Source of the DNA: Macrostomum hystrix
Taxonomy: Eukaryota > Animalia > Platyhelminthes
Assembly (NCBI GenBank): GCA_950097015.1
Contig: CATNEN010000039.1
Coordinates: forward strand, 15,066,001-15,130,000
Direction of reading: 5' to 3'
Length of the DNA stretch: 64,000 bases
Part shown: in pieces, positions 47,047 to 61,515 of the stretch
Layout: each line of letters starts with the position of its first letter
Position numbering within the stretch: position 1 is the stretch's first letter
Made by a program: the position numbers and the translations under genes
Notes under the pieces: generated by a model
The model's input: only the letters and a program-made list of their open reading frames with translations
Told to the model about the DNA's origin: nothing
Database searches by the model: none

Positions 47047-50000
47047 ATGCATTGGCAGTCAACACTATTGGTTGTGGCAATTGTTCTAAGTTGCCTGACT
47101 GGCTGCTTTGCGCCACCAGTTAATAAGAAGACAGGAAAAGTGGTTGAAAAAAAGCCTGGACCTGCTGATGATTTGCTGGTAAGTTCACTCTTGTATGCAT
47201 ACATATGAAAGCTAGAATATATATCTTGAAACTGAAACTCTTGACACACATTCTATTGTGCAAATTTACTATTTCCATAAATAGTAAATGATATTTGACT
47301 TAATGATATTTGACTCAATGACTTCCTATGGCTGCCTCATATTTACAATTTTACAATAAGCTCTTTTAACTCATTAATTTTTCATTCCCATATTCAAACT
47401 TAACATTTGTATTTATTATTTCCTGACTTTTAAAGAAAAAATATTGTTTTTAATACTTGCTGAATTTTCAATAAAATCTGAGAAATTCACAATATCTGTC
47501 GTTTTTCAGGCTTTACAGAAAATCTTTAAAAAATTCAGGTTGTCTAGTTATACATGTAATTATAGTTACTGTTTTAGGACACATTTCTCATGCCATGCTT
47601 TGTGTTCAAGTAGTTACATAGTTAGCTAGAACAGAAATATTTTTAAACCCAACTGGGTCCATTAGCCCACGTCTTAGCTGTTCAGTCCGTGGACTGGTTC
47701 AGGGCACCATAATGTACACGAATTTTCTATCTAATGCTGAGTATACCCATTCTGTAACTGGGTGAATTGTCACTTTATGCATTTTTGTTATGTGGAAACT
47801 ATAAAAAAAAATTACAGAAGACCTACACACCTGATGACTATAAGAAATATGTCGAAGAAGTCTTATCTCATCTTCACACTGACAAGCATTTCAAATCTGA
47901 ATGGGAGAAATTCAAAAATTCTACTCACAAGATGAGTGTATGTTTAAAATTGCCTTTTTAAATATGGTGTGTTTGTTTATTACATGCTGGGATTTATATT
48001 GCAATTTGCTAACATTTTTCTAACGTATTCTTTTTTTCTGGTTGACAAGTGTTTTTATTTTCCTAGAATATGCACCAATGCTAACATTTTTGGTTGACCT
48101 TGATTTCTATTAAACTCATTATATAACATTTAAGATACTAAAATGACCCTTATCAGGCTAATCTACCATACAGCACTTACATAAAAGAAGTGGCACAGAT
48201 TTTGGAATCGGATAAAGTTTTTGCTAGACGTATCCAGAATATGTCAGAGGTTTGTACCAATTCTTTTTCTTGCTTATTTTGCTATTCGTTGTTGTTGTTG
48301 TTGTTGTTTCAATTGGCCTCCAATAATGGATGTACTACGATGATTTGGACATTAAGATTAACTTGATGCACACATATTGAACTAAACAATGTATTTTAAA
48401 ACACATTTTATAGCGTAAAATCTATTAAAATCGGAATTATTCAATAGTTAGACAATTAAGCAATAAAAAAGGTTAATATGAAACATTACTGCATCGTTTA
48501 TAGTGGTCCGTCCAGTGTTAATGATTTATGACTGTCATGTTTTATGAATAAGAGCACATGCCGGTGATTTTAACAACACTTATCTTAATTTGTGTCAATT
48601 AGCCTTTGCATTTCCTAATCATTTAACAGCCTGCCTGCTTCATTAGTTTGCTATTTTATATTAATATTATTAACTGATACCTTTATTTCGTTACAAGAGC
48701 CTAAATAGTAATTAGCAGTTTCAAAATTCACATTTTAAATGTGAAACTCAGGTAATTCTGGTAAGTGAAGCTTTGGATTACAATGGATGGGGTTGAGTAT
48801 ATTAGGGATTTTAGGACATTATGTGGGGGAATTTAGGAGATTGAGTAGGGAGTTCAAGAGATTGAGTAGGGGCCTAGGGAGTTCAGGTGCATGAGTAGGG
48901 AGTTCAAGAGATTGAGTAGGGATTTCAGGAGATTGAGTAGGGACTTCAGGTATTGAGAAGGGAGTTTAAGAAATTGAGTAATGAGTTCAGGGTATTGAGT
49001 AAGGAGTCCAGGGAATTGAGTAGGGAGTTCAGGTGAATGAGTAGGGAGTTCAAGAGATTGAGTAGGGACTTCAGGAGATTGTGGGAGATTAGTTAGAAGT
49101 TTGAGTCGTGTTTATGAGTTAGGGAGATTGAGTAGAGCATTCTTATATAGCCATCTAAGTATAAAACAAAGCTCAGAGGCGCCCCAGCCTGATGATGTCA
49201 CCCATTCGTCCCCTACCGTGCAGGCTGGTGATTTCGCCAGTCAGCTAGAGTTTGTGGATCACGAGGTGCGCAGCCGCCTAGACGAGATCAAGCGCAAAGA
49301 GATTGATCGGCTAAATGCGCTGGAGAAAATGTTGGAGGCTAAGCGAGCCGCGGCCGGTGATCCAATTCGCGAAGCTGAGGTGCCAATCCACCCGGATATA
49401 TTCAACATGGACCAGGAGACCATTAAGAAGGCCCACTTGGATCACGAAAATCCGCACTCGTTTGAGGCGTCCGATTTGGAGAAACTAATACGCCAGGTTG
49501 TGGCCGATATGCATCGAGTGGACGAGGCTAAACAGGTGCGCAATTAGCCAGGGATGGAATCGATTCGATGGGAAAGATAGTAAGGTGACAGAGTAACATG
49601 AATGAGAAGACGACAGAATGACAAGATGAGACAATACGACACAATGACAAGATGAGACTAGGAAGATGACAGAATGACAAGATGTAGGAAGATGACAGAA
49701 TGACAAGATGTAGGAAGATGACAGAATGACAAGATGTAGGAAGTCGACAGAATGACAAGATGAGACTAGGAAGTCGACAGAATGACAAGATAAGTCTAGG
49801 AAGTCGACAGAATGACAAGATTAGACTAGGAAAATGACAGAATGACAAGATGTAGGAAGACGACAGAATGACAAGAAATGACAAGATGAGACTAGGAAGA
49901 CGACAGAATGACAATAAATGACAAGATGAGACTAGGAAGACGACAGAATGACAATAAATGACAAGATGAGACTAGGAAGATGTCAGAATGACAAGATGAG

Positions 50001-53000
50001 GCACTGGAAAGATAACAAGACGATAAAAATATGAAAAGAATTGAGCAAATGATCAATTAGGATAATCAAATATTACGAAAAGGACAAAATCTGATTTTAA
50101 AGAGTTATAATATAACGACAGAATACATAATATAATGTGATTTATAATGACAAGATTAATTAGCCAATCCTAAACCAAAACAATCCAGGAGCAATACAAG
50201 CAATACGAGATGATGAAGGATCATTTGCGCCTCCGCAAGCTGCAAAAGATTAACGACACCAAGGTCAGGCAGGAAGAGGAGAAGCACTATCAGGAGGAGA
50301 AGAAGAAGCATAAGGAGCACGACAAGGTTCATCACCCGGTGCGTGACTTTCTACTGATAGTAGCCTAATGGAAATATACAAAAATAATTATCGATTGCTT
50401 TGGTACATTTCTCAGCAATGCTTGAAATGTCCCCTGTACTAGATAGTTTTTTGCACCAGATTTGTTTTAAAAACAAACAGACCCTGTTCACCTAGTAGGA
50501 TTTTTTTCAAGTAATCCATATTTTCAGTCAGTTTTTACCTGACTCTGGTTAAGGGTCGCGTTAACCCACGCATTTATAACAGATTAACTTACCTATTCAC
50601 CCAGATGCTTCCCATAATTATGCACTGACATCCCTACTGACCCACTGACATCCCTACTGACCCACTGACATCCCATGCTGACCCACTGATATCCATACTG
50701 ACCGACTGACATCCCTACTGACCCACTGACATCCCTACTGACCCACTGACATCCCATGCTGACCCACTGATATCCATACTGACCGACTGACATCCCTACT
50801 GACCCACTGACATCCCTACTGACCCACTGACATCCCATGCTGACCCACTGATATCCATACTGACCGACTGACATCCCTACTGACCCACTGACATCCCTAC
50901 TGACCCACTGATATCCCTACTGACCCACTGACATCCCTACTGACCCACGGATATCCCTACTGACCCACTGACATCCCTACTGACCCTTTGACATCCCTGC
51001 TGACCCACTACAGTAGGGATATATCACTGAAATCACTTCAAAACCGCTGGCATCACTGCTAAACCATTGACATCCCTCATGACTTAATGACATCACTAAT
51101 TGATATTCCCCATTTTATTACTGAGGTGAGTGACCTACAATTATTTTAACTGCAAGCTTTTTTCTACCCTGCATTCATTAGACCTTATATCATGTTTGAT
51201 CCTATGTTATTACTATTGTTGTGCCAGGTCAGAAAATATAAGTACATTGGACTTATTAATTACAGGGCAGTTTGGCACAGCTAACTGATCTTTGGACCAA
51301 TCAGGATGGACTTAGTCAAGATTTCGATGCTAAAACATTTTTTAATTTGCACGGTAATTCTTCTCTAACAAGCTAGATAAAACAATTGAAAATCTCAAAT
51401 CGTTCTTTTTTAAATAGTGGAAAGCGGGTTTTAATGTTCTTTTTATCGATAACGGCATTTTTGTCTATTTTGCCTTGTTCTTTTTTCTTATGCCATTTTT
51501 GTCAAAACTTTTCTTAGAACTTAATCTAGCTAGTTTATGAAATTGTTTGCCAACCACTGCAGCCTCATGGCTACTGAACTCTCAACCCAATGACCCAACC
51601 ACTGCAGCCTCATGGCTACTGAACTCTCAACCCAATGACCCAACCACTGCAGCCTCATGGCTACTGAACTCTCAACCCAATGACCCAACCACTGCTGCCT
51701 CATGGCTACTGAACTCTCAAACCAATGACCCAACCACTGCAGCCTCATGGCTACTGAACTCTCAAACCAATGACCCAACCACTGCAGTTTCATGGCTACT
51801 GAACTCTCAACCCAAGGACCCAACCACTGCAGCCTCATGGCTACTGAACTCTCAACCCAAGGACCCAACCACTGCAGCCTCATGGCTACTGAACTCTCAA
51901 CCCAATGACCCAACCACTGCAGCCTCATGGCTACTGAACTCTCAACCCAATGACCCAACCACTGCAGCCTCATTGCTACTGAACTCTCAACCCAATGACC
52001 CAACCACTGCAGTCTCATGGCTACTGAACTCTCAACCCAATGACCCAACCACTGCAGCCTCATGGCTACTGAACTCTCAACCCAATGACCCAACCACTGC
52101 AGCCTCATGGCTACTGAACTCTCAACCCAATGTCCCAACCACTGCAGCCTCATGGCTACTGAACTCTCAACCCAATGACCCAACCACTGCAGCCTCATGG
52201 CTACTGAACTCTCAACCCAATGTCCCAACCACTGCAGCCTCATGGCTACTGAACTCTCAACCCAATGACCCAACCACTGCAGCCTCATGGCTACTGAACT
52301 CTCAACCCAATGACCCAACCACTGCAGCCTCATTGCTACTGAACTCTCAACCCAATGACCCAACCACTGCAGCCTCATGGCTACTGAACTCTCAACCCAA
52401 TGACCCAACCACTGCAGCCTCATGGCTACTGAACTCTCAACCCAATGACCCAACCACTGCAGCCTCATGGCTACTGAACTCTCAACCCAATGACCCAACC
52501 ACTGCAGCCTCATTGCTACTGAACTCTCAACCCAAGGACCCAACCACTGCTGCCTCATGGCTACTGAACTCTCAACCCAATGACCCAACCACTGCAGCCT
52601 CATGGCTACTGAACTCTCAACCCAATGACCCAACCACTGCAGCCTCATGGCTACTGAACTCTCAACCCAATGACCCAACCACTGCAGCCTCATGGCTACT
52701 GAACTCTCAACCCAATGACCCAACCACTGCAGCCTCATGGCTACTGAACTCTCAACCCAATGACCCAACCACTGCAGCCTCATGGCTACTGAACTCTCAA
52801 CCCGATGAACCAACCACTGCAGCCTCATTGCTACTGAACTCTCAACCCAATGACCCAACCACTGCAGCCTCATGGCTACTGAACTCTCAACCCAATGACC
52901 CAACCACTGCAGCCTCATTGCTACTGAACTCTCAACCCAATGACCCAACCACTGCTGCCTCATGGCTACTGAACTCTCAACCCAATGACCCAACCACTGC

Positions 53001-56000
53001 AGCCTCATTGCTACTGAACTCTCAACCCAATGACCCAACCACTGCAGCCTCATTGCTACTGAACTCTCAACCCAATGACCCAACCACTGCAGCCTCATGG
53101 CTACTGAACTCTCAACCCAAGGACCCAACCACTGCAGCCTCATGGCTACTGAACTCTCAACCCAATGACCCAACCACTGCAGCCTCATTGCTACTGAACT
53201 CTCAACCCAAGGACCTAGAAATGAACTTTTTTTATTTAATATTTGGTTTACATGCTTTGATAATCATTATTTCTTTGGTAAATTTTTACCTAATCTAAAT
53301 TTTTTACTCTCTTTTACTTTTTGCTTTGTAAAACACTACTAACACAGGGCAGCAAGGAGCAGCTGCAGGATACTTGGGTTGAGGAGGACCACTTGGACAA
53401 GGAGTCTTTCAATCCGAAAACATTTTTCCTGCTTCACGGTAGGTATTACATTCTGAACAGTTTGTCAATTGGACCGGTTTGATAATCTGCATCTGCAACG
53501 ATTTTTTAACTAAGCTACTATTAGTAGGCCTTCGCGATTACAGTGCTTCTATTGAATTACGATTCTTATTTACCCGCAGATGTGAACGGAGACGGTCACC
53601 TGGATGTTAACGAGATTGAGGCTTTGTTTTTAAAAGAGGTTCGCACACAATTGCTATGGTTTTTGTGCTTTAGCATGGATTAGCTTCTGTAGCTCTATTG
53701 TTTTTTATTCTATCCATCTGTTTATCTACACTGACCCCATCCTGTCCTCCAGTGTGTCTGCATTGACCCCATTCTGTCCTCCAGTGTGTCTGCATTGACC
53801 CCATCCTGTCCTCCAGTGTGTCTACCCTGACCCCATCCTGTCCATCAGTTTGTTAATATTGACCCCATCCTGTCCATCAGTGTGTCTACATTGACCCCAT
53901 CCTGTCCTCCAGTGTGTCTACCCTGACCCCATCCTGTCCTCCAGTGTGTCTACCCTGACCCCATCCCGTCCATCAGTTTGTTAATATTGACCTCATCCTG
54001 TCCTCCAGTGTGTCTACCCTGACCCCATCCTGTCCTCCAGTGTGTCTGCATTGACCCCATCCTGTCCTCCAGTGTGTCTGCATTGACCCCATCCTGTCCA
54101 TCAGTGTGTCTACATTGACCTCATCCTGTCCTCCAGTGTGTCTACCCTGACCCCATCCTGTCCTCCAGTGTGTCTACACTGACCCCATCCTGTCCTCCAG
54201 TGTGTCTGCATTGACCCCATCCTGTCCTCCAGTGTGTCTGCATTGACCTCATCCTGTCCTCCAGTGTGTCTGCATTGACCCCATCCTGTCCTCCAGTGTG
54301 TCTGCATTGACCCCATCCTATCCTCCAGTGTTTCTACATTGACCCCACCCTATCCATCAGTGTGTCTACACTGACCCCATCCTGTCCATCAGTGTGTCTA
54401 CCCTGACCCCATCCTGTCCTCCAGTGTGTCTGCATTGACCCCATCCTGTCCTCCAGTGTGTCTGCATTGACCTCATCCTGTCCTCCAGTGTGTCTGCATT
54501 GACCCCATCCTGTCCTCCAGTGTGTCTGCATTGACCCCATCCTATCCTCCAGTGTTTCTACATTGACCCCACCCTATCCATCAGTGTGTCTACACTGACC
54601 CCATCCTGTCCTCCAGTGTGTCTACCCTGACCCCATCCTGTCCATCAGTGTGTCTACACTGACCCCATCCTGTCCATCAGTGTGTCTACCCTGACCCCAT
54701 CCTGTCCTCCAGTGTGTCTACACTGACCCCATTCTGTCCTCCGGTGTGTCTACACTGACCCCATCCTGTCCTCCGGTGTGTCTACACTGACCCCATCCTG
54801 TCCTCCGGTGTGTCTACACTGACCCCATCCTGTCCTCCGGTGTGTCTGCACTGACCCCATCCTGTCCTCCGGTGTGTCTACACTGACCCCATCCTGTCCT
54901 CCGGTGTGTCCACACTAACCCCATCCTGTCCTCCGGTGTGTCCACACTGACCCCATCCTGTCCATCAGTGTGTCCACACTGACCCCATCCTGTCCTATCC
55001 TGACCCCTACAATTCGTAAATTGGTACCCTCCTACCGAATCAATTTGTTATTTTTTCATTTAAATTTGCTTTATAGTTAACTGGATGACCCTGACTAACT
55101 AATTGAAAGTGAGTTTCGAGATACACTGAGCTAATTGCAGTTGCAGGTGCTTCACAATAGCAGTAGCGGTGCTGTCTGGTAACTTGCAAATTTAGACATT
55201 TAGTAGTTTTGTATATATAGTGATTAGATGGAATTGGTAAAAAATGCAACCTATCAGTAGTTTCTTCTTCAAATACACGTTACATGCTACTATAAGTAAG
55301 CAATCTAAATAAAAGCCTGTCATAAACTGCTTCTGTTTAGCTTACAAGTTAAAAGATGCATTGCAATTGACGATTTGAAATTAAAATATATTAAAATTTC
55401 ATTTGTATTCGCAGTTGGAGAAGGTATATAATCGGACTAACGATACGACCGTGTCTGCTTTTGAAAAACAACACGAAATGGAGCGAATGCGTCAGGAGGT
55501 CCTTGACAAGGTGGACACCAACAGGGACATGATGATCAGCTGGGAGGAATTCGAGCGATGGACCAAGAACCCGGAGTTTAAGAAGGACGAGGATTGGAAG
55601 GTAGCTAGTTGTGGTCTTTGATAACAATTCCCCCTTCCTGTGTTCCAGTGGGATGTCACTGACCTCCCTTCCTGTGTTCGAGTGGGATGTCACTGACCTC
55701 CCTTCCTGTGTTCAAGTGGGATGTCACTGACCTCCCTTCCTGTGTTCCAGTGGGATGTCACTGACCTCCCTTCCTGTGTTCCACTGGGATTTCAATGCCC
55801 TATTTAAAAATGGCTATCGTTCAATACTGACACATTGCTGACCAAATTCCCGCATCGCAGACTTCCGAGGAGGATGATGCGGCCCCATACAAAGATGACG
55901 AATTCAAACAGTTCGAAGATGACTACGATCGCGAACACCCGGATGATGATGACGACGTGAGTAACAGCAGAATCATGTCCTTCCTGTTGTTAATTCAACA

Positions 56001-56791
56001 TGTTTTTGAACTAATACTCCGTAAAAACTCACAACTATAAACTAATTCAGTGGATCAATTATTTCTACTTGTTCACCCAAGCCTTATGTGTTACCTTTTA
56101 CCTCTGACTATATATCGTACACGCATAGTTGTTTGTTTAAAATAACTGTTAAAATTAAAATCGAAAAAAATCACGACAAACCCGGAAAACTTACGTCAAA
56201 CCCGGAAATATTACGACAAAAGCGCTAAAATTGCAACAAACCAAACAGCGCAATATGAACCCGTGCAACGCGTAAAACATCTCGTTGTCTAAAGTTTTAA
56301 TGAACTGTCGTTATGAAAATTATATATTGTTCCAGCGTGGCAGTCGTCACGACAGAGACAAAGACGATCACGATAGTCGCGAACACGACGACAGGCCGTC
56401 TGATCATCACGATAAAACACCTGAGCATCACGACGAGGCTCCTGAACACCACGATAAGGCTCCTGAACACCACGATAAGGCTCCTGAACACCACGATAAG
56501 GCTCCTGAACACCACGATAAGGCTCCTGAACACCACGATAAGGCTCCTGAACACCACGATAAGGCTCCTGAACACCACGATAAGGCTCCTGAACACCACG
56601 ATAAGGCTCCTGAACACCACGATAAGGCTCCTGAACACCACGATAAGGCTCCTGAACACCACGATAAGGCTCCTGAACACCACGATAAGGCTCCTGAACA
56701 CCACGATAAGGCTCCTGAACACCACGAAGCTGCCAGTCCTCAGCATCACGACGATGTTTCTGCTTCGCATACAGCCGGAGGCCACAAATAA
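47047..56791 (+). CDS. NUCB2: Nucleobindin (NUCB1/NUCB2 family, Golgi/secreted EF-hand protein) with alternative exons and a His-rich tail, ~530 aa
   Basis: Exons: 47047-47178 (signal peptide MHWQSTLLVVAIVLSCLTGCFA), 47818-47937 and/or 48157-48249, 49224-49535 (LEFVDHEVRSRLDEIKR..HLDHENPHSFEASDLEKLI), 50189-50338 (YKQYEMMKDH..KVHHP), 51266-51353 or 53348-53438, 53580-53638 (EF1 DVNGDGHLDVNE), 55415-55600 (EF2 DTNRDMMISWEE), 55861-55956, 56336-56791. The symbol is nominal, since invertebrate nucleobindins are expected to be co-orthologous to NUCB1 and NUCB2. Confidence 0.9.
47818..47937 (+). CDS. Nucleobindin alternative exon A1 (KTYTPDDYKKYVEEVLSHLHTDKHFKSEWEKFKNSTHKMS)
   Basis: Flanked by TACAG and GTATGT, 120 nt, phase 0/0. 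It resembles the nesfatin-region helix Y..YL..V...LETDKHF of NUCB2. Confidence 0.75.
48157..48249 (+). CDS. Nucleobindin alternative exon A2 (ANLPYSTYIKEVAQILESDKVFARRIQNMSE)
   Basis: Flanked by ATCAG and GTTTGT, 93 nt, phase 0/0. It is paralogous to A1 and matches the same NUCB segment. Confidence 0.75.
48836..49135. repeat. Degenerate ~20-bp repeat (GAGATTGAGTAGGGAGTTCA)
   Basis: Tandem periodicity read directly. Confidence 0.8.
49606..50000. repeat. Purine-rich ~25-40 bp repeat (GACAGAATGACAAGATGAGACTAGGAA)
   Basis: Tandem periodicity read directly. Confidence 0.85.
50623..51009. repeat. 20-bp minisatellite (ACTGACATCCCTACTGACCC) with an 81-bp higher-order unit
   Basis: Tandem periodicity read directly. 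Confidence 0.92.
51266..51353 (+). CDS. Nucleobindin mutually exclusive exon B1 (GSLAQLTDLWTNQDGLSQDFDAKTFFNLH)
   Basis: Flanked by TACAG and GTAATT, 88 nt, phase 0/1. It matches NUCB [30 protein letters not shown]. Confidence 0.85.
51550..53215. repeat. 45-bp minisatellite, ~37 units, between NUCB exons B1 and B2
   Basis: Unit CCAACCACTGCAGCCTCATGGCTACTGAACTCTCAACCCAATGAC. Confidence 0.97.
53348..53438 (+). CDS. Nucleobindin mutually exclusive exon B2 (GSKEQLQDTWVEEDHLDKESFNPKTFFLLH)
   Basis: Flanked by CACAG and GTAGGT, 91 nt, phase 0/1. It is a paralogue of B1. Confidence 0.88.
53724..54995. repeat. 32-bp minisatellite (TGACCCCATCCTGTCCTCCAGTGTGTCTACAC)
   Basis: Tandem periodicity read directly. 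Confidence 0.95.
55632..55790. repeat. 34-bp short array (CCCTTCCTGTGTTCCAGTGGGATGTCACTGACCT)
   Basis: About 4.5 units read directly. Confidence 0.9.
56411..56724 (+). repeat. Coding 21-bp minisatellite encoding (DKAPEHH) x ~15
   Basis: Lies within the NUCB terminal exon, in frame. Confidence 0.9.
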
Positions 56792-57414: not shown

Positions 57415-58773
57415 ATTCTGTTCTTGTCAGCATCTGCTTATTTTAATAGTGTATTTCATTATCCTTGTTTTAGTAGAATTCATACTCCCGCTAAAACAAT
57501 AGGGATGTTTCTTTGGGTGATTTCAGTTGGAATCTGCGGTGTTTCCAGAAAAAGAAACAGCCGAACGCTGGAAACATACCAATCGGATGATTCCATACTT
57601 AGAATCTACCCAACTGGGCGTTTTCTCGGTGCTTCTTGGTGGCGAAATTGAATCACCCAAAGAACCCTCCAGTTCGGAAGATTCCATGCTCAGAAACCGC
57701 CGAGGAATCGCCCGTTAATAATTCTCTGGTTGTCCCATGGGCCACTGGTTCGGGTGATTCTTCGGCGGTTTCCGCACAATTTACGGTTACATCGGCTGCT
57801 AAACCTGGGTGGTTTCTTTAACTCTTGCGAGATAGGGGGGATTTTGGTAGATTCCACTCCTATTTTGCACAATAAAACCCGCCGAAGAAGCAGCCGAATT
57901 TTTTACAGGGCTACTATTGATTAGCTAGCGTAACGCATGGCTGTTCTATTGCTTATCCAATATTGATAAACAGTGAACCTTCTTGTAAACAAAGGTGAGA
58001 ATTATTTTTATTTTAAAGCTGCTGTTGTGCTTTTGTAATATTGGTATGAACAAATGCTTTATGCCGTGAAAAACTGTGCAACTATATCTGATTGACATAC
58101 CCCAAGTAATCTTAAGTAGTTTAATAAGTTTAATTTTATTCAAGTCAACTTCTACGGTTTTATCACATTTTCTTCACATGGTGAATTGCTAATTTTTATT
58201 TCTGACGGATTTGTTTTATTTCTTGAGATATCCCCAATACCTGGTTTTATTATTGCTTGACTAATTGAGCAAATTTCTTTTATTCAAATCACACCGGGTG
58301 CTTCTCAAATTAGTAAAATTAAAACAATTTTTTGTTTAATCTCTCTCTCTCTCGCTTTATTCCGCTTCAATACGTCTTCGCTTCGCAAATGTGCTTTGCA
58401 GAAATGACCATTAATGTGACAATAGAAACAAAGAAAATCTTTTGAGTGATAACAAATAAATCGACAGCCGAATTATTCGCTATTGTGATGTGTTGTTGTG
58501 TGTGACTTCAAATCGATTTTATTTATTTTTTTTCTTTCGGGCAAAACTTTTATAAACTATGAAGTTATCTACTTACTCAAGTAGGATATTTAGCATCGTT
58601 GAATCAGAAATCATTAAAAATATTAATGGCTGTCATGGGTTCGAAACCGCCATGGTCCTAGAATTTTTGTAAAATTTTTGCTTTATACGCACCGCTTCTA
58701 CTATTAGTAGTTTAATATCTATTTTGAATGTTTTTTTCAGCTGAAGGCAGCCATTTGAATTAAGCAATTAATC

Positions 58774-61515
58774 ATGGTTTCTGTAATGCAAACTGTTGAC
58801 ACTGCGCACGATGATATGATTCACGACGCCCAGTTGGATTACTACGGCACCCGCCTGGCTACCTGTTCCTCCGATAAAACCATTCGAGTTTTCGATGTAC
58901 GCAATCGTGCCCAATCGTTGCTGTGCACTTTAACTAGGCACGAGGGCCCCGTGTGGCAGGTAGCCTGGTCTCATCCGGTTCATGGCTCCCTGCTGGCTTC
59001 GTGTAGCTACGATCGGCGAGTCCTAGTTTGGCGCGAGACCGCCGCGACGGCTCCGCAGTCTCAGCTGCATCAGCAGCGCCTAATGCAACAGCAGCAGCAG
59101 CAGTGGGAGGTGATCTATGAGCACAGTCAGCACGAGAGTAGCGTCAATTCTGTGGCCTGGGCGCCGCACGAATATGGCCTGATGTTCGCCTGCGCTTCCT
59201 CTGATGGCAACATCTCCGTAGTGACCTGCGGTCAGGTAACTTTTTTCGAGATTTGAAAATTTCACCCGATATGTATCGAAAAATATCAATGTCAATTTAT
59301 AGCCTGTTTAACGCAATAACTTAATGAATACAGAATATACGATGAATGAATAGATTTTTTCTATGAATTTTAAACCTGCGTTAAAAACAAGCCGATTCGA
59401 ATTTTGCCTATATGTATCGAAAACCAATAATGTGTGTAAAAAAAGAAAAAATTTAAGTAATTTTTACCGCCGATATGTATAGAAAAACGTAACATTTATG
59501 TATTTCGAATATATAAATTGCAACATGCCTTTAAATCAAGAACCGTGCCTAATAGTTGAAATGATAAATCACATTCAGGATGGCAATTGGGAGACTTCGA
59601 AGATCCCCAACGCGCACACCATCGGCGTCAACGCCGTCAGCTGGGCGCCGGCCACCCAGCCGAGCTCCCTGCTGTGCACTCCGATGACCGCCAACTCCGC
59701 CGACGAAGCTAGCGGCCGCGGCTCGTCTGGCGCCTCCAGCATCGCCGCTCGCCGACTTGTGTCAGGAGGATGTGATGGACAGGTGGCGTGTTACTTTTGT
59801 ATCACTATTAGAGCCTTAAAGATCATTCGACTCCAATAAAATATAATTTAAGTTCCTCCGATTCACTCTAAAGTCCTAAAAGTACATAGAGTTCCCTCCC
59901 AAATCTCTAAAGTACATTCTGATCCCTTCCAAATCCCAAAGTAACATATTCACTCCCAGATCACTAAAGTACATTCTGATCCCTCACAAATCCCTAAAGT
60001 AACATATTCACTCCCAGATCACTAAAGTACATTCTGATCTCCCACAAATCCTCCAAATAACATTGACTGCCAGATCCCTAAAGACTTTTAAGTACCTTCC
60101 AATTCCCAAAATACATATTCACTCCCAGATCCCTAAAGTACATTCTGATCCCTCACAAATCCCCCAAATAGCATTCACTCCCAGATTCCTAAAGTACATT
60201 CTGATCCCTCACAAATCCCCCAAATAGCATTCACTCTCAGAACCCTAAAGTACATTCTGATCCCTCACAAATCCCCCAAATAGCATTCACTCCCAGATTC
60301 CTAAAGTACATTCTGATCCCTCACAAATCCCCCAAATAGCATTCACTCTCAGATCCCTAAAGTACATTCTGATCCCTCCTAAATCCCCCAAATAGCATTC
60401 ACTCTCAGATCCCTAAAGTACATTCTGATCCCTCCTAAATCCCCAAAGTACCATATTCACTCTCAGATCCCCAAGGTACACCTTCCCCTCTCTAAAATCC
60501 CTAAAGTGCATGTTGATCCCTTCCAGATCCTTATCCCAGATTCAACTATTCTTTCCTTTTATCCCTAACATTCGCCGTATTAAAATCCAATTCTATTCTC
60601 CGTGCGCTCGGATTTATTGCAGGTGCGAATTTGGCGCCTCGAACCGGACGGAGCCCAGTGGGTCCGGGAGAGCACACTCGAGGGCCACTCAGACTGGGTT
60701 CGCGACGTAGCCTGGGCGCCAAACCTCGGATTGTCCAGGGACATGATCGCCAGCTGCGGACAGGTAAGCTATTTTTCATTGAATAACTGTCTAGAAATCG
60801 CCGTTTTCCCGGTGAAATCTACGATTTTCTGTCAGATCGAAACACCGATTTTCTCATCTTGTCATATTAGATCGCCGATTTTGTCTGAAATCTCGGAAAG
60901 GATCGCCGATTTTCTCATCCTGTCAGATTGGATCGCCGATTTTCTCATCCTGTCAGATTGGATCGCCAATTTTCTCATCCTGTCAGATTGGATCGCCGAT
61001 TTTCTCATCCTGTCAGATTGGATCGCCGATTTTCTCATCCTGTCAGATTGGATCGCCGATTTTCTCATCCTGTCTGTCAGATTGGATCGCCGATTTTCTC
61101 ATCCTGTCTGTCAGATTGGATCGCCGATTTTCTCATCCTGTCAGATTGGATCGCCGATTTTCTCATCCTGTCTGTCAGATTGGATCGCCGATTTTCTCAT
61201 CCTGTCTGTCAGATTGGATCGCCGATTTTCTCATCCTGTCAGATTGGATCGCCGATTTTCTCATAATTTGCCACCTCCGCCACTGTCTATGTCCAGGACT
61301 GCCGAGTGATGATCTGGACCCGTCGCGAGGAGGACGCCTCCTGGAGCTCCGTCACCCTGCCGCCGTTCCCGGACGTGCTCTGGCACGTCAGCTGGAGCGT
61401 CACTGGCAACCTCCTGGCCGTTAGCAGCGGCGACAACAAAGTCAGCCTGTGGAAGGAGAGCCTGGACGGCCAGTGGATCTGCCTGAATGCGGCAGGCAGC
61501 GCCGATGAGCAGTGA
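58774..61515 (+). CDS. SEC13: Protein transport protein SEC13 (COPII/nucleoporin WD40), ~341 aa
   Basis: Exons are 58774-59235, 59579-59782, 60623-60763 and 61297-61515, all phase 0. Diagnostic motifs: [75 protein letters not shown]. Confidence 0.96.
59870..60510. repeat. ~58-bp dimeric minisatellite in a SEC13 intron
   Basis: Unit approximately CCCTAAAGTACATTCTGATCCCTCACAAATCCCCCAAATAGCATTCACTCTCAGAT. Confidence 0.85.
60890..61264. repeat. 30/34-bp minisatellite in a SEC13 intron (GATCGCCGATTTTCTCATCCTGTCAGATTG)
   Basis: Tandem periodicity read directly. Confidence 0.93.

Follow-up and report, generated by a model that had tools for sequence, protein, structure and literature searches.

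The stretch of DNA analyzed here (the window) comprised 64,000 nucleotides of the flatworm Macrostomum hystrix (assembly GCA_950097015.1, contig CATNEN010000039.1, positions 15,066,001 to 15,130,000 of the forward strand), and carried on its forward strand a gene in which the exon preceding EF-hand 1 is present in two copies, named B1 and B2. All coordinates given below are positions within the window unless another contig is named. The exon model was read from the sequence, and homology searches were run exon by exon. By homology, the gene is a member of the nucleobindin (NUCB/CALNUC/NEFA) family. Exon 3 scored 67.7 bits on PF25434, the profile of the NUCB1-like N-terminal domain, for which the cut-off is 27, and an EF-hand pair follows a conserved block ending in KTFF-x-L-H, the arrangement by which the nucleobindin family is recognized. 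A protein of Macrostomum lignano (P0097, UniRef A0A1I8HPU3), which itself bears PF25434 and EF-hand families, matched the gene exon for exon and is its ortholog; no Macrostomum ortholog beyond that of M. lignano was found in protein searches. The ancient nucleobindin exon borders around EF-hand 1 are located at Pro221, His252, and Glu271 of human NUCB1 (bioRxiv 10.1101/566836). The borders in M. hystrix fall after a proline (exon 4), a histidine (B1 and B2), and a glutamate (EF-hand 1 exon), and match these family borders.

An earlier sequence-only reading of the window had described B1 and B2 as stop-free exons of 88 and 91 nt with intact AG and GT sites, entered in phase 0 and left in phase 1. 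These features and the exon coordinates were all confirmed on the sequence, with AG at 51264-65 and GT at 51354-55 for B1, and AG at 53346-47 and GT at 53439-40 for B2. The same reading held that inclusion of both exons, or of neither, would shift the frame of the EF-hand exon, and this proved correct. When both are included, B2 is out of frame by one base and a stop is met after 10 codons; when both are skipped, the EF-hand 1 exon is entered in phase 0 and a stop is met at codon 2. Since both arrangements shift the frame to an early stop, exactly one B exon is predicted per productive mRNA. B1 and B2 matched each other reciprocally in tblastn (E = 9e-6), with 15 of 29 residues identical and 56% identity at the DNA level. 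No further exon of the B type was found within the window, and the 220-Mb genome, assembled in 42 contigs, contained only three of them: B1, B2, and the one B exon belonging to a paralog located on a different contig. The segment had also been assigned to the block entering EF-hand 1, and the solved Ca2+-binding domain of NUCB1 (1SNL) bore this out: B2 aligned to residues 3-29 (E = 2.3e-5), a stretch that stops one residue short of the EF-hand 1 loop, and B1 aligned weakly to the same residues (E = 0.17). B2 was identical to the B block of P0097 at 23 of 30 residues. B1 has uncharged residues where B2 has several acidic ones.

A separate observation concerns the joint length of neighboring exons. 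Between exon 4 and the EF-hand 2 exon (50338 to 55415), B2 and the EF-hand 1 exon together measure 150 nt, and B1 and the EF-hand 1 exon 147 nt. Skipping of a B exon together with the EF-hand 1 exon would therefore preserve the reading frame while removing EF-hand 1 from the protein; the family includes one protein, from another organism, that is built in precisely this way (P0071).

Table. Exons of the M. hystrix nucleobindin gene and the repeat between its two B exons (contig CATNEN010000039.1; positions within the window)
Feature	Position	Strand	Description	Basis
Exon 1	47047..47178	+	Start codon, hydrophobic N-terminus, phase 0 at end	Sequence; aligns with N-terminus of M. lignano P0097
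Exon 2a	47818..47937	+	Phase 0-0; diverged copy of N-terminal exon pair	Pfam NUCB1_N profile positions 34-61
Exon 2b	48157..48249	+	Phase 0-0; canonical-looking copy, same N-terminal segment	Pfam NUCB1_N positions 32-61
Exon 3	49224..49535	+	104 codons, remainder of NUCB1_N domain	Pfam PF25434, 88% identity to P0097
Exon 4	50189..50338	+	50 codons, basic, stops just 5' of B segment, phase 0 end, donor 50339	Aligns to P0097
Exon B1	51266..51353	+	88 nt, phase 0 to 1; diverged copy of exon preceding EF-hand 1 loop	
Minisatellite in B1-B2 intron	51550..53215	.	45-bp unit, 37 copies	Tandem Repeats Finder
Exon B2	53348..53438	+	91 nt, phase 0 to 1; canonical copy, probable default	
EF-hand 1 exon	53580..53638	+	59 nt, phase 1 to 0; Ca2+-binding loop, common to both predicted isoforms	Sequence
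EF-hand 2 exon	55415..55600	+	62 codons	Pfam EF-hand_7 E = 1.6e-4, EF-hand_1 E = 1.1e-3, both below cut-off (single exon)
Acidic exon	55861..55956	+	32 codons	Aligns to P0097
Last exon	56336..56791	+	In-frame 21-bp coding repeat 56400-56727; stop TAA at 56789-56791	

We lean, with moderate confidence, towards the reading that B1 and B2 constitute a mutually exclusive exon pair that arose by tandem duplication and in which B2 is the default. The duplicated unit would be an ancient exon of about 30 residues, whose product leads up to the EF-hand 1 loop with a short helix, a linker, and the entering helix. The splicing machinery would pick one B exon for each mRNA, and the products with both or neither would run into an early stop, be unproductive, and presumably be removed by nonsense-mediated decay. 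B2 would serve as the default and B1 as a minor or tissue-restricted form. Because the Ca2+ loop sits in the shared next exon, the isoforms would differ only in the preceding helix and linker, with B1 placing fewer acidic residues ahead of a loop that stays the same. The sequence-only reading had proposed isoforms that differ in Ca2+-binding or partner properties, and we infer only that the two may differ in function.

The sequence-only reading had further suggested that both copies are under selection. A profile of the 30-residue block was built from 137 distinct versions among the proteins obtained in the searches, with the M. lignano ortholog excluded. Fifteen columns were at least 80% conserved in these family segments, and B1 agreed with the consensus in 11 of them. 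In a neutral null model, which assigns all of the change to B1, B2 was mutated in silico until it carried as many differences as separate the two exons (38 over 87 bases), and 19% of the 200,000 simulated decays (37,353) stayed stop-free. None of the stop-free decays reached the profile score or the conserved-column count of B1, and a single one reached 15 identical residues. The pattern used for picking blocks itself requires several conserved residues; full-length members that miss the pattern show the same residues. Synonymous sites between B1 and B2 were saturated, the non-synonymous divergence (dN) was 0.50, and two leucines were retained across two or three base changes. As judged by its conserved residues, which no stop-free neutral decay matched, B1 was long under protein-level selection in the past. 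The suggested selection on B1 was thereby upheld for the past; the simulation does not bear on present use.

B1 and B2 are not the only duplicated exons of this gene. Exons 2a and 2b cover the same part of the NUCB1_N profile and share the same phases, and among the M. lignano models of the ortholog, P0097 and P0266 use the 2a type, with P0264 and P0265 having the 2b type instead. By analogy with these models, the nucleobindin gene uses the 2a/2b pair alternatively, and the alternative use in M. lignano was counted in favor of B1 and B2 being an exclusive pair as well.

We found that the same segment is exchanged in other animals. The nucleobindin-2-like isoforms X1 and X2 of the mussel Mytilus galloprovincialis (XP_076116084.1 and XP_076116085.1; P0191 and P0274) are both 580 residues long and differ at 10 residues, all at positions 236-260, and an independent annotation (VDI68174.1, P0272) carries the X2 type. 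This pair belongs to the same family and involves the same exon as B1 and B2, with the 30-residue block before the EF-hand 1 loop swapped. The Mytilus isoforms are annotated models known from protein records; both variants are equal in length and near the family consensus, whereas B1 of M. hystrix is far more diverged and one codon shorter. In the bryozoan Watersipora subatra, the nucleobindin-2-like isoforms X1 and X2 (X1 and X2/X3 correspond to P0099, P0017, and P0100) are identical save for a 39-residue insert and a swap of the B block. Two 384-residue proteins of a bryozoan-like organism (P0098 and P0310), encoded on 2-kb JGI contigs and 60% identical to Watersipora, differ at 10 residues, all within 233-257. 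We take these contigs as intronless transcripts because they hardly exceed the coding sequence. Both bryozoan types are retained from one genus to another, with 25 of 30 residues shared between Watersipora X1 and Bugula and 22 of 30 between Watersipora X2 and P0098, compared with 20 of 30 between Watersipora X1 and X2. Moreover, Watersipora X1 and one of the two Bugula neritina proteins (P0313, the other being P0106) also hold a second exon-2-like copy, so that the same two exons are duplicated as in M. hystrix; the bryozoan proteins carry this N-terminal copy in addition, in tandem, whereas in M. lignano it takes the place of the other copy. No swap of the B block was found in the protein records of spiders, horseshoe crabs, insects, a springtail, amphioxus, a scallop, or fishes. 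The statement in the sequence-only reading that no such switch was known in nucleobindins was therefore superseded by the records of Mytilus, Watersipora, and the bryozoan-like organism. A literature search returned no paper that describes duplicated exons or mutually exclusive splicing in nucleobindins, and the B-block swap is thus absent from the papers found but visible in the protein records of other animals. A protein of Drosophila simulans (GD12377, P0107) contains an identical B block twice, at positions 215 and 379, which looks like an assembly or annotation duplication rather than an alternative exon.

The origin of these pairs was considered from the block itself. One ancient origin shared across phyla was not supported, in that the pairs within a lineage (20 of 30 residues in both the mussel and Watersipora) are closer than blocks of the same type between phyla (16-18 of 30). 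Two residues ahead of the invariant tryptophan, B1, B2, and the M. lignano ortholog have an aspartate, in contrast to the glutamate of the paralogs. Because of the closer pairs within lineages and of the aspartate common to B1, B2, and the M. lignano ortholog, separate duplications are the simpler reading, 30 residues being too few to decide. Of the two versions in the flatworm, the bryozoans, and the mollusc, the canonical one has an acidic residue at position 4 and a histidine at position 15, and the other lacks both. It is possible, though rather unlikely in our estimation, that the exon before EF-hand 1 is a recurrent and perhaps ancient isoform switch of spiralian nucleobindins, represented in the flatworm, the bryozoans, and the mollusc. 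If such a switch exists, the B pair and the 2a/2b pair of the flatworm could together specify as many as four proteins that differ in partner or Ca2+ behavior.

The most serious alternative is that B1 is a relic, a duplicate that worked for long but is now unspliced or spliced at noise level, so that only B2 makes protein and the intactness of B1 reflects a recent loss of use. We give this a considerable probability, although one short of even. Several observations favored it and weighed against an exclusive pair in present use. With a profile score of 43 bits, compared with 75 for B2 and a minimum of 69 among the family members, B1 scored lowest of all B segments and was the most diverged of about 140 family segments. 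Its third-position GC content was 0.31 and intron-like, in comparison with 0.70 in B2, 0.62 in exon 3, and 0.78 in exon 4. The M. lignano ortholog is represented by four models drawn from two annotation sources; each has a B2-type segment and none a B1-type one, even though the set does capture the 2a/2b alternative. Transcript evidence was sought by searching public runs with exon 3, which returned eight runs, none recorded as RNA, and reads were examined over 50900-51950, beside the 45-bp repeat, in runs X1, X2, X5, and X8. Run X1 contained a 211-nt contig over B1 and its intron flanks, which was colinear with the genome and looks like DNA, and no contig on B1 was obtained from X2, X5, and X8 over this region. 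Each of runs X5-X8 amounts to just 39-47 million letters but contains every sampled word of exon 3, and these runs are therefore probably RNA; in that case B1 is no major form in them. The absence of a spliced B1 contig from X1, X2, X5, and X8 is weak evidence, as contigs drop rare variants.

A relic, however, is at odds with the state of the exon and with its counterparts elsewhere. B1 carries no disabling change, its frame, AG, GT, and phase all being intact, and its conserved residues are far above the neutral expectation at a saturated synonymous divergence. In the mussel and the bryozoans, this exon exists as a functioning alternative pair. The low third-position GC of B1 is not peculiar to it either, since exons 1, 2a, and 2b also show low values (0.35-0.42), and both 2a and 2b are used in M. 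lignano. We infer from the sequence that B1 is probably spliced into M. hystrix mRNA.

B1 might also be used otherwise, for example as a terminal exon with intron read-through, which would yield a protein cut off before the EF-hands. The open frame around B1 (51260-51373) runs just 7 codons beyond the B1 donor before a stop, so that the tail added would be short, but the donor is a good GT site, and B1 retains the residues of the entering helix, which are relevant only if the EF-hand 1 loop follows. We regard such use as very improbable. That the two copies are merged haplotypes, an assembly artefact which the sequence-only reading had raised against itself, deserves next to no weight: nothing speaks for it other than the long minisatellite between the copies, an error-prone place for assemblies, whereas alleles would be near-identical and B1 and B2 show only 56% identity, a length difference of one codon, and strongly different third-position GC, and B1 was recovered independently from run X1 together with its own intron flanks, though X1 may be the source sample of the assembly.

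Returning to B1 and B2 as an exclusive pair, comparable systems have been described elsewhere. Homologous exclusive exons whose fidelity depends on nonsense-mediated decay are an established class; in Caenorhabditis elegans, such dependence was reported for 14 of 29 clusters (PMC4165533). The 22 homologous clusters of that study likewise consist of neighboring homologous exons that hardly differ in length and preserve the frame downstream, and their fidelity rests in part on decay of the frame-shifted products of double inclusion or double skipping. The C. elegans clusters were confirmed experimentally, whereas the exclusivity proposed for B1 and B2 comes from frame arithmetic alone. Mutually exclusive EF-hand exons that give isoforms with different Ca2+ behavior are found in alpha-actinin and P/Q-type Ca2+ channels, as cited in PMC9177970. 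The likeness lies in duplicated alternative exons in or at an EF-hand, and the difference in that the alternative exons of alpha-actinin and the channels contain the EF-hand motif itself, whereas the choice between B1 and B2 would change only the preceding helix and linker. An overlap of B1 and B2 with the G-alpha-binding (GBA) motif was considered and rejected, the motif being placed at the C-terminal part of EF-hand 2 (review, PMC8198689) and unaffected by the choice of B exon.

No convincing RNA structure that would enforce the choice between B1 and B2 was found among inverted pairs and repeat complementarity. The best non-repeat inverted pair that could act as docking and selector sequences (50351-50377 with 53501-53527) has a 14-bp core, which is close to chance, about one such pair being expected in 3.2 kb by our own estimate. 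The minisatellite unit is complementary to the start of B2 at -45 kcal/mol, but this value ranked 11th of 234 windows and was reached by 20 of 1,000 shuffles, and was not taken as evidence.

Nucleobindins are conserved Ca2+ proteins of the secretory pathway, and their biology in invertebrates has received little attention. Should B1 be in use, three animal phyla have a duplicate of this small exon and retain it as an alternative, the segment before EF-hand 1 would be marked as a tuning site, and a natural isoform pair would be available for comparison in a flatworm genus. RNA interference and in situ hybridization are routine for M. lignano. A silent B1, by contrast, would make the locus a commonplace leftover of exon duplication.

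The paralogous nucleobindin gene, orthologous to M. lignano P0001, lies on contig 34 (6421600-6424750 of that contig). Its exon-2-like exon and its B exon are each present once, its exons 3 and 4 are differently arranged, and a 30-bp minisatellite is located in the intron before its EF-hand 1 exon. The EF-hand 1 exon of the gene in the window is 79% identical to that of the paralog.

Minisatellites occupy five introns of the gene in the window from exon 2b onwards (48875-49081, 49606-50023, 50623-51074, 51550-53215, 53725-54996, and 55632-55801), with units of 20-45 bp in up to 40 copies, mostly C-rich on the + strand. Exon 4 and B1 are separated by a 20-bp repeat (50623-51009), and the 45-bp array between B1 and B2 yields a meaningless open frame of 585 codons. 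In the last exon, the 21-bp repeat (about 15.6 copies) encodes a histidine- and aspartate-rich C-terminal tail; the tail of the M. lignano ortholog differs from it in being rich in arginine and aspartate. Downstream on the same strand lies a SEC13-like WD40 gene (58759-61512). The M. lignano model P0266 is a nucleobindin fused to the same SEC13-like protein, probably through a read-through mis-annotation, which indicates that the gene order is common to both species.

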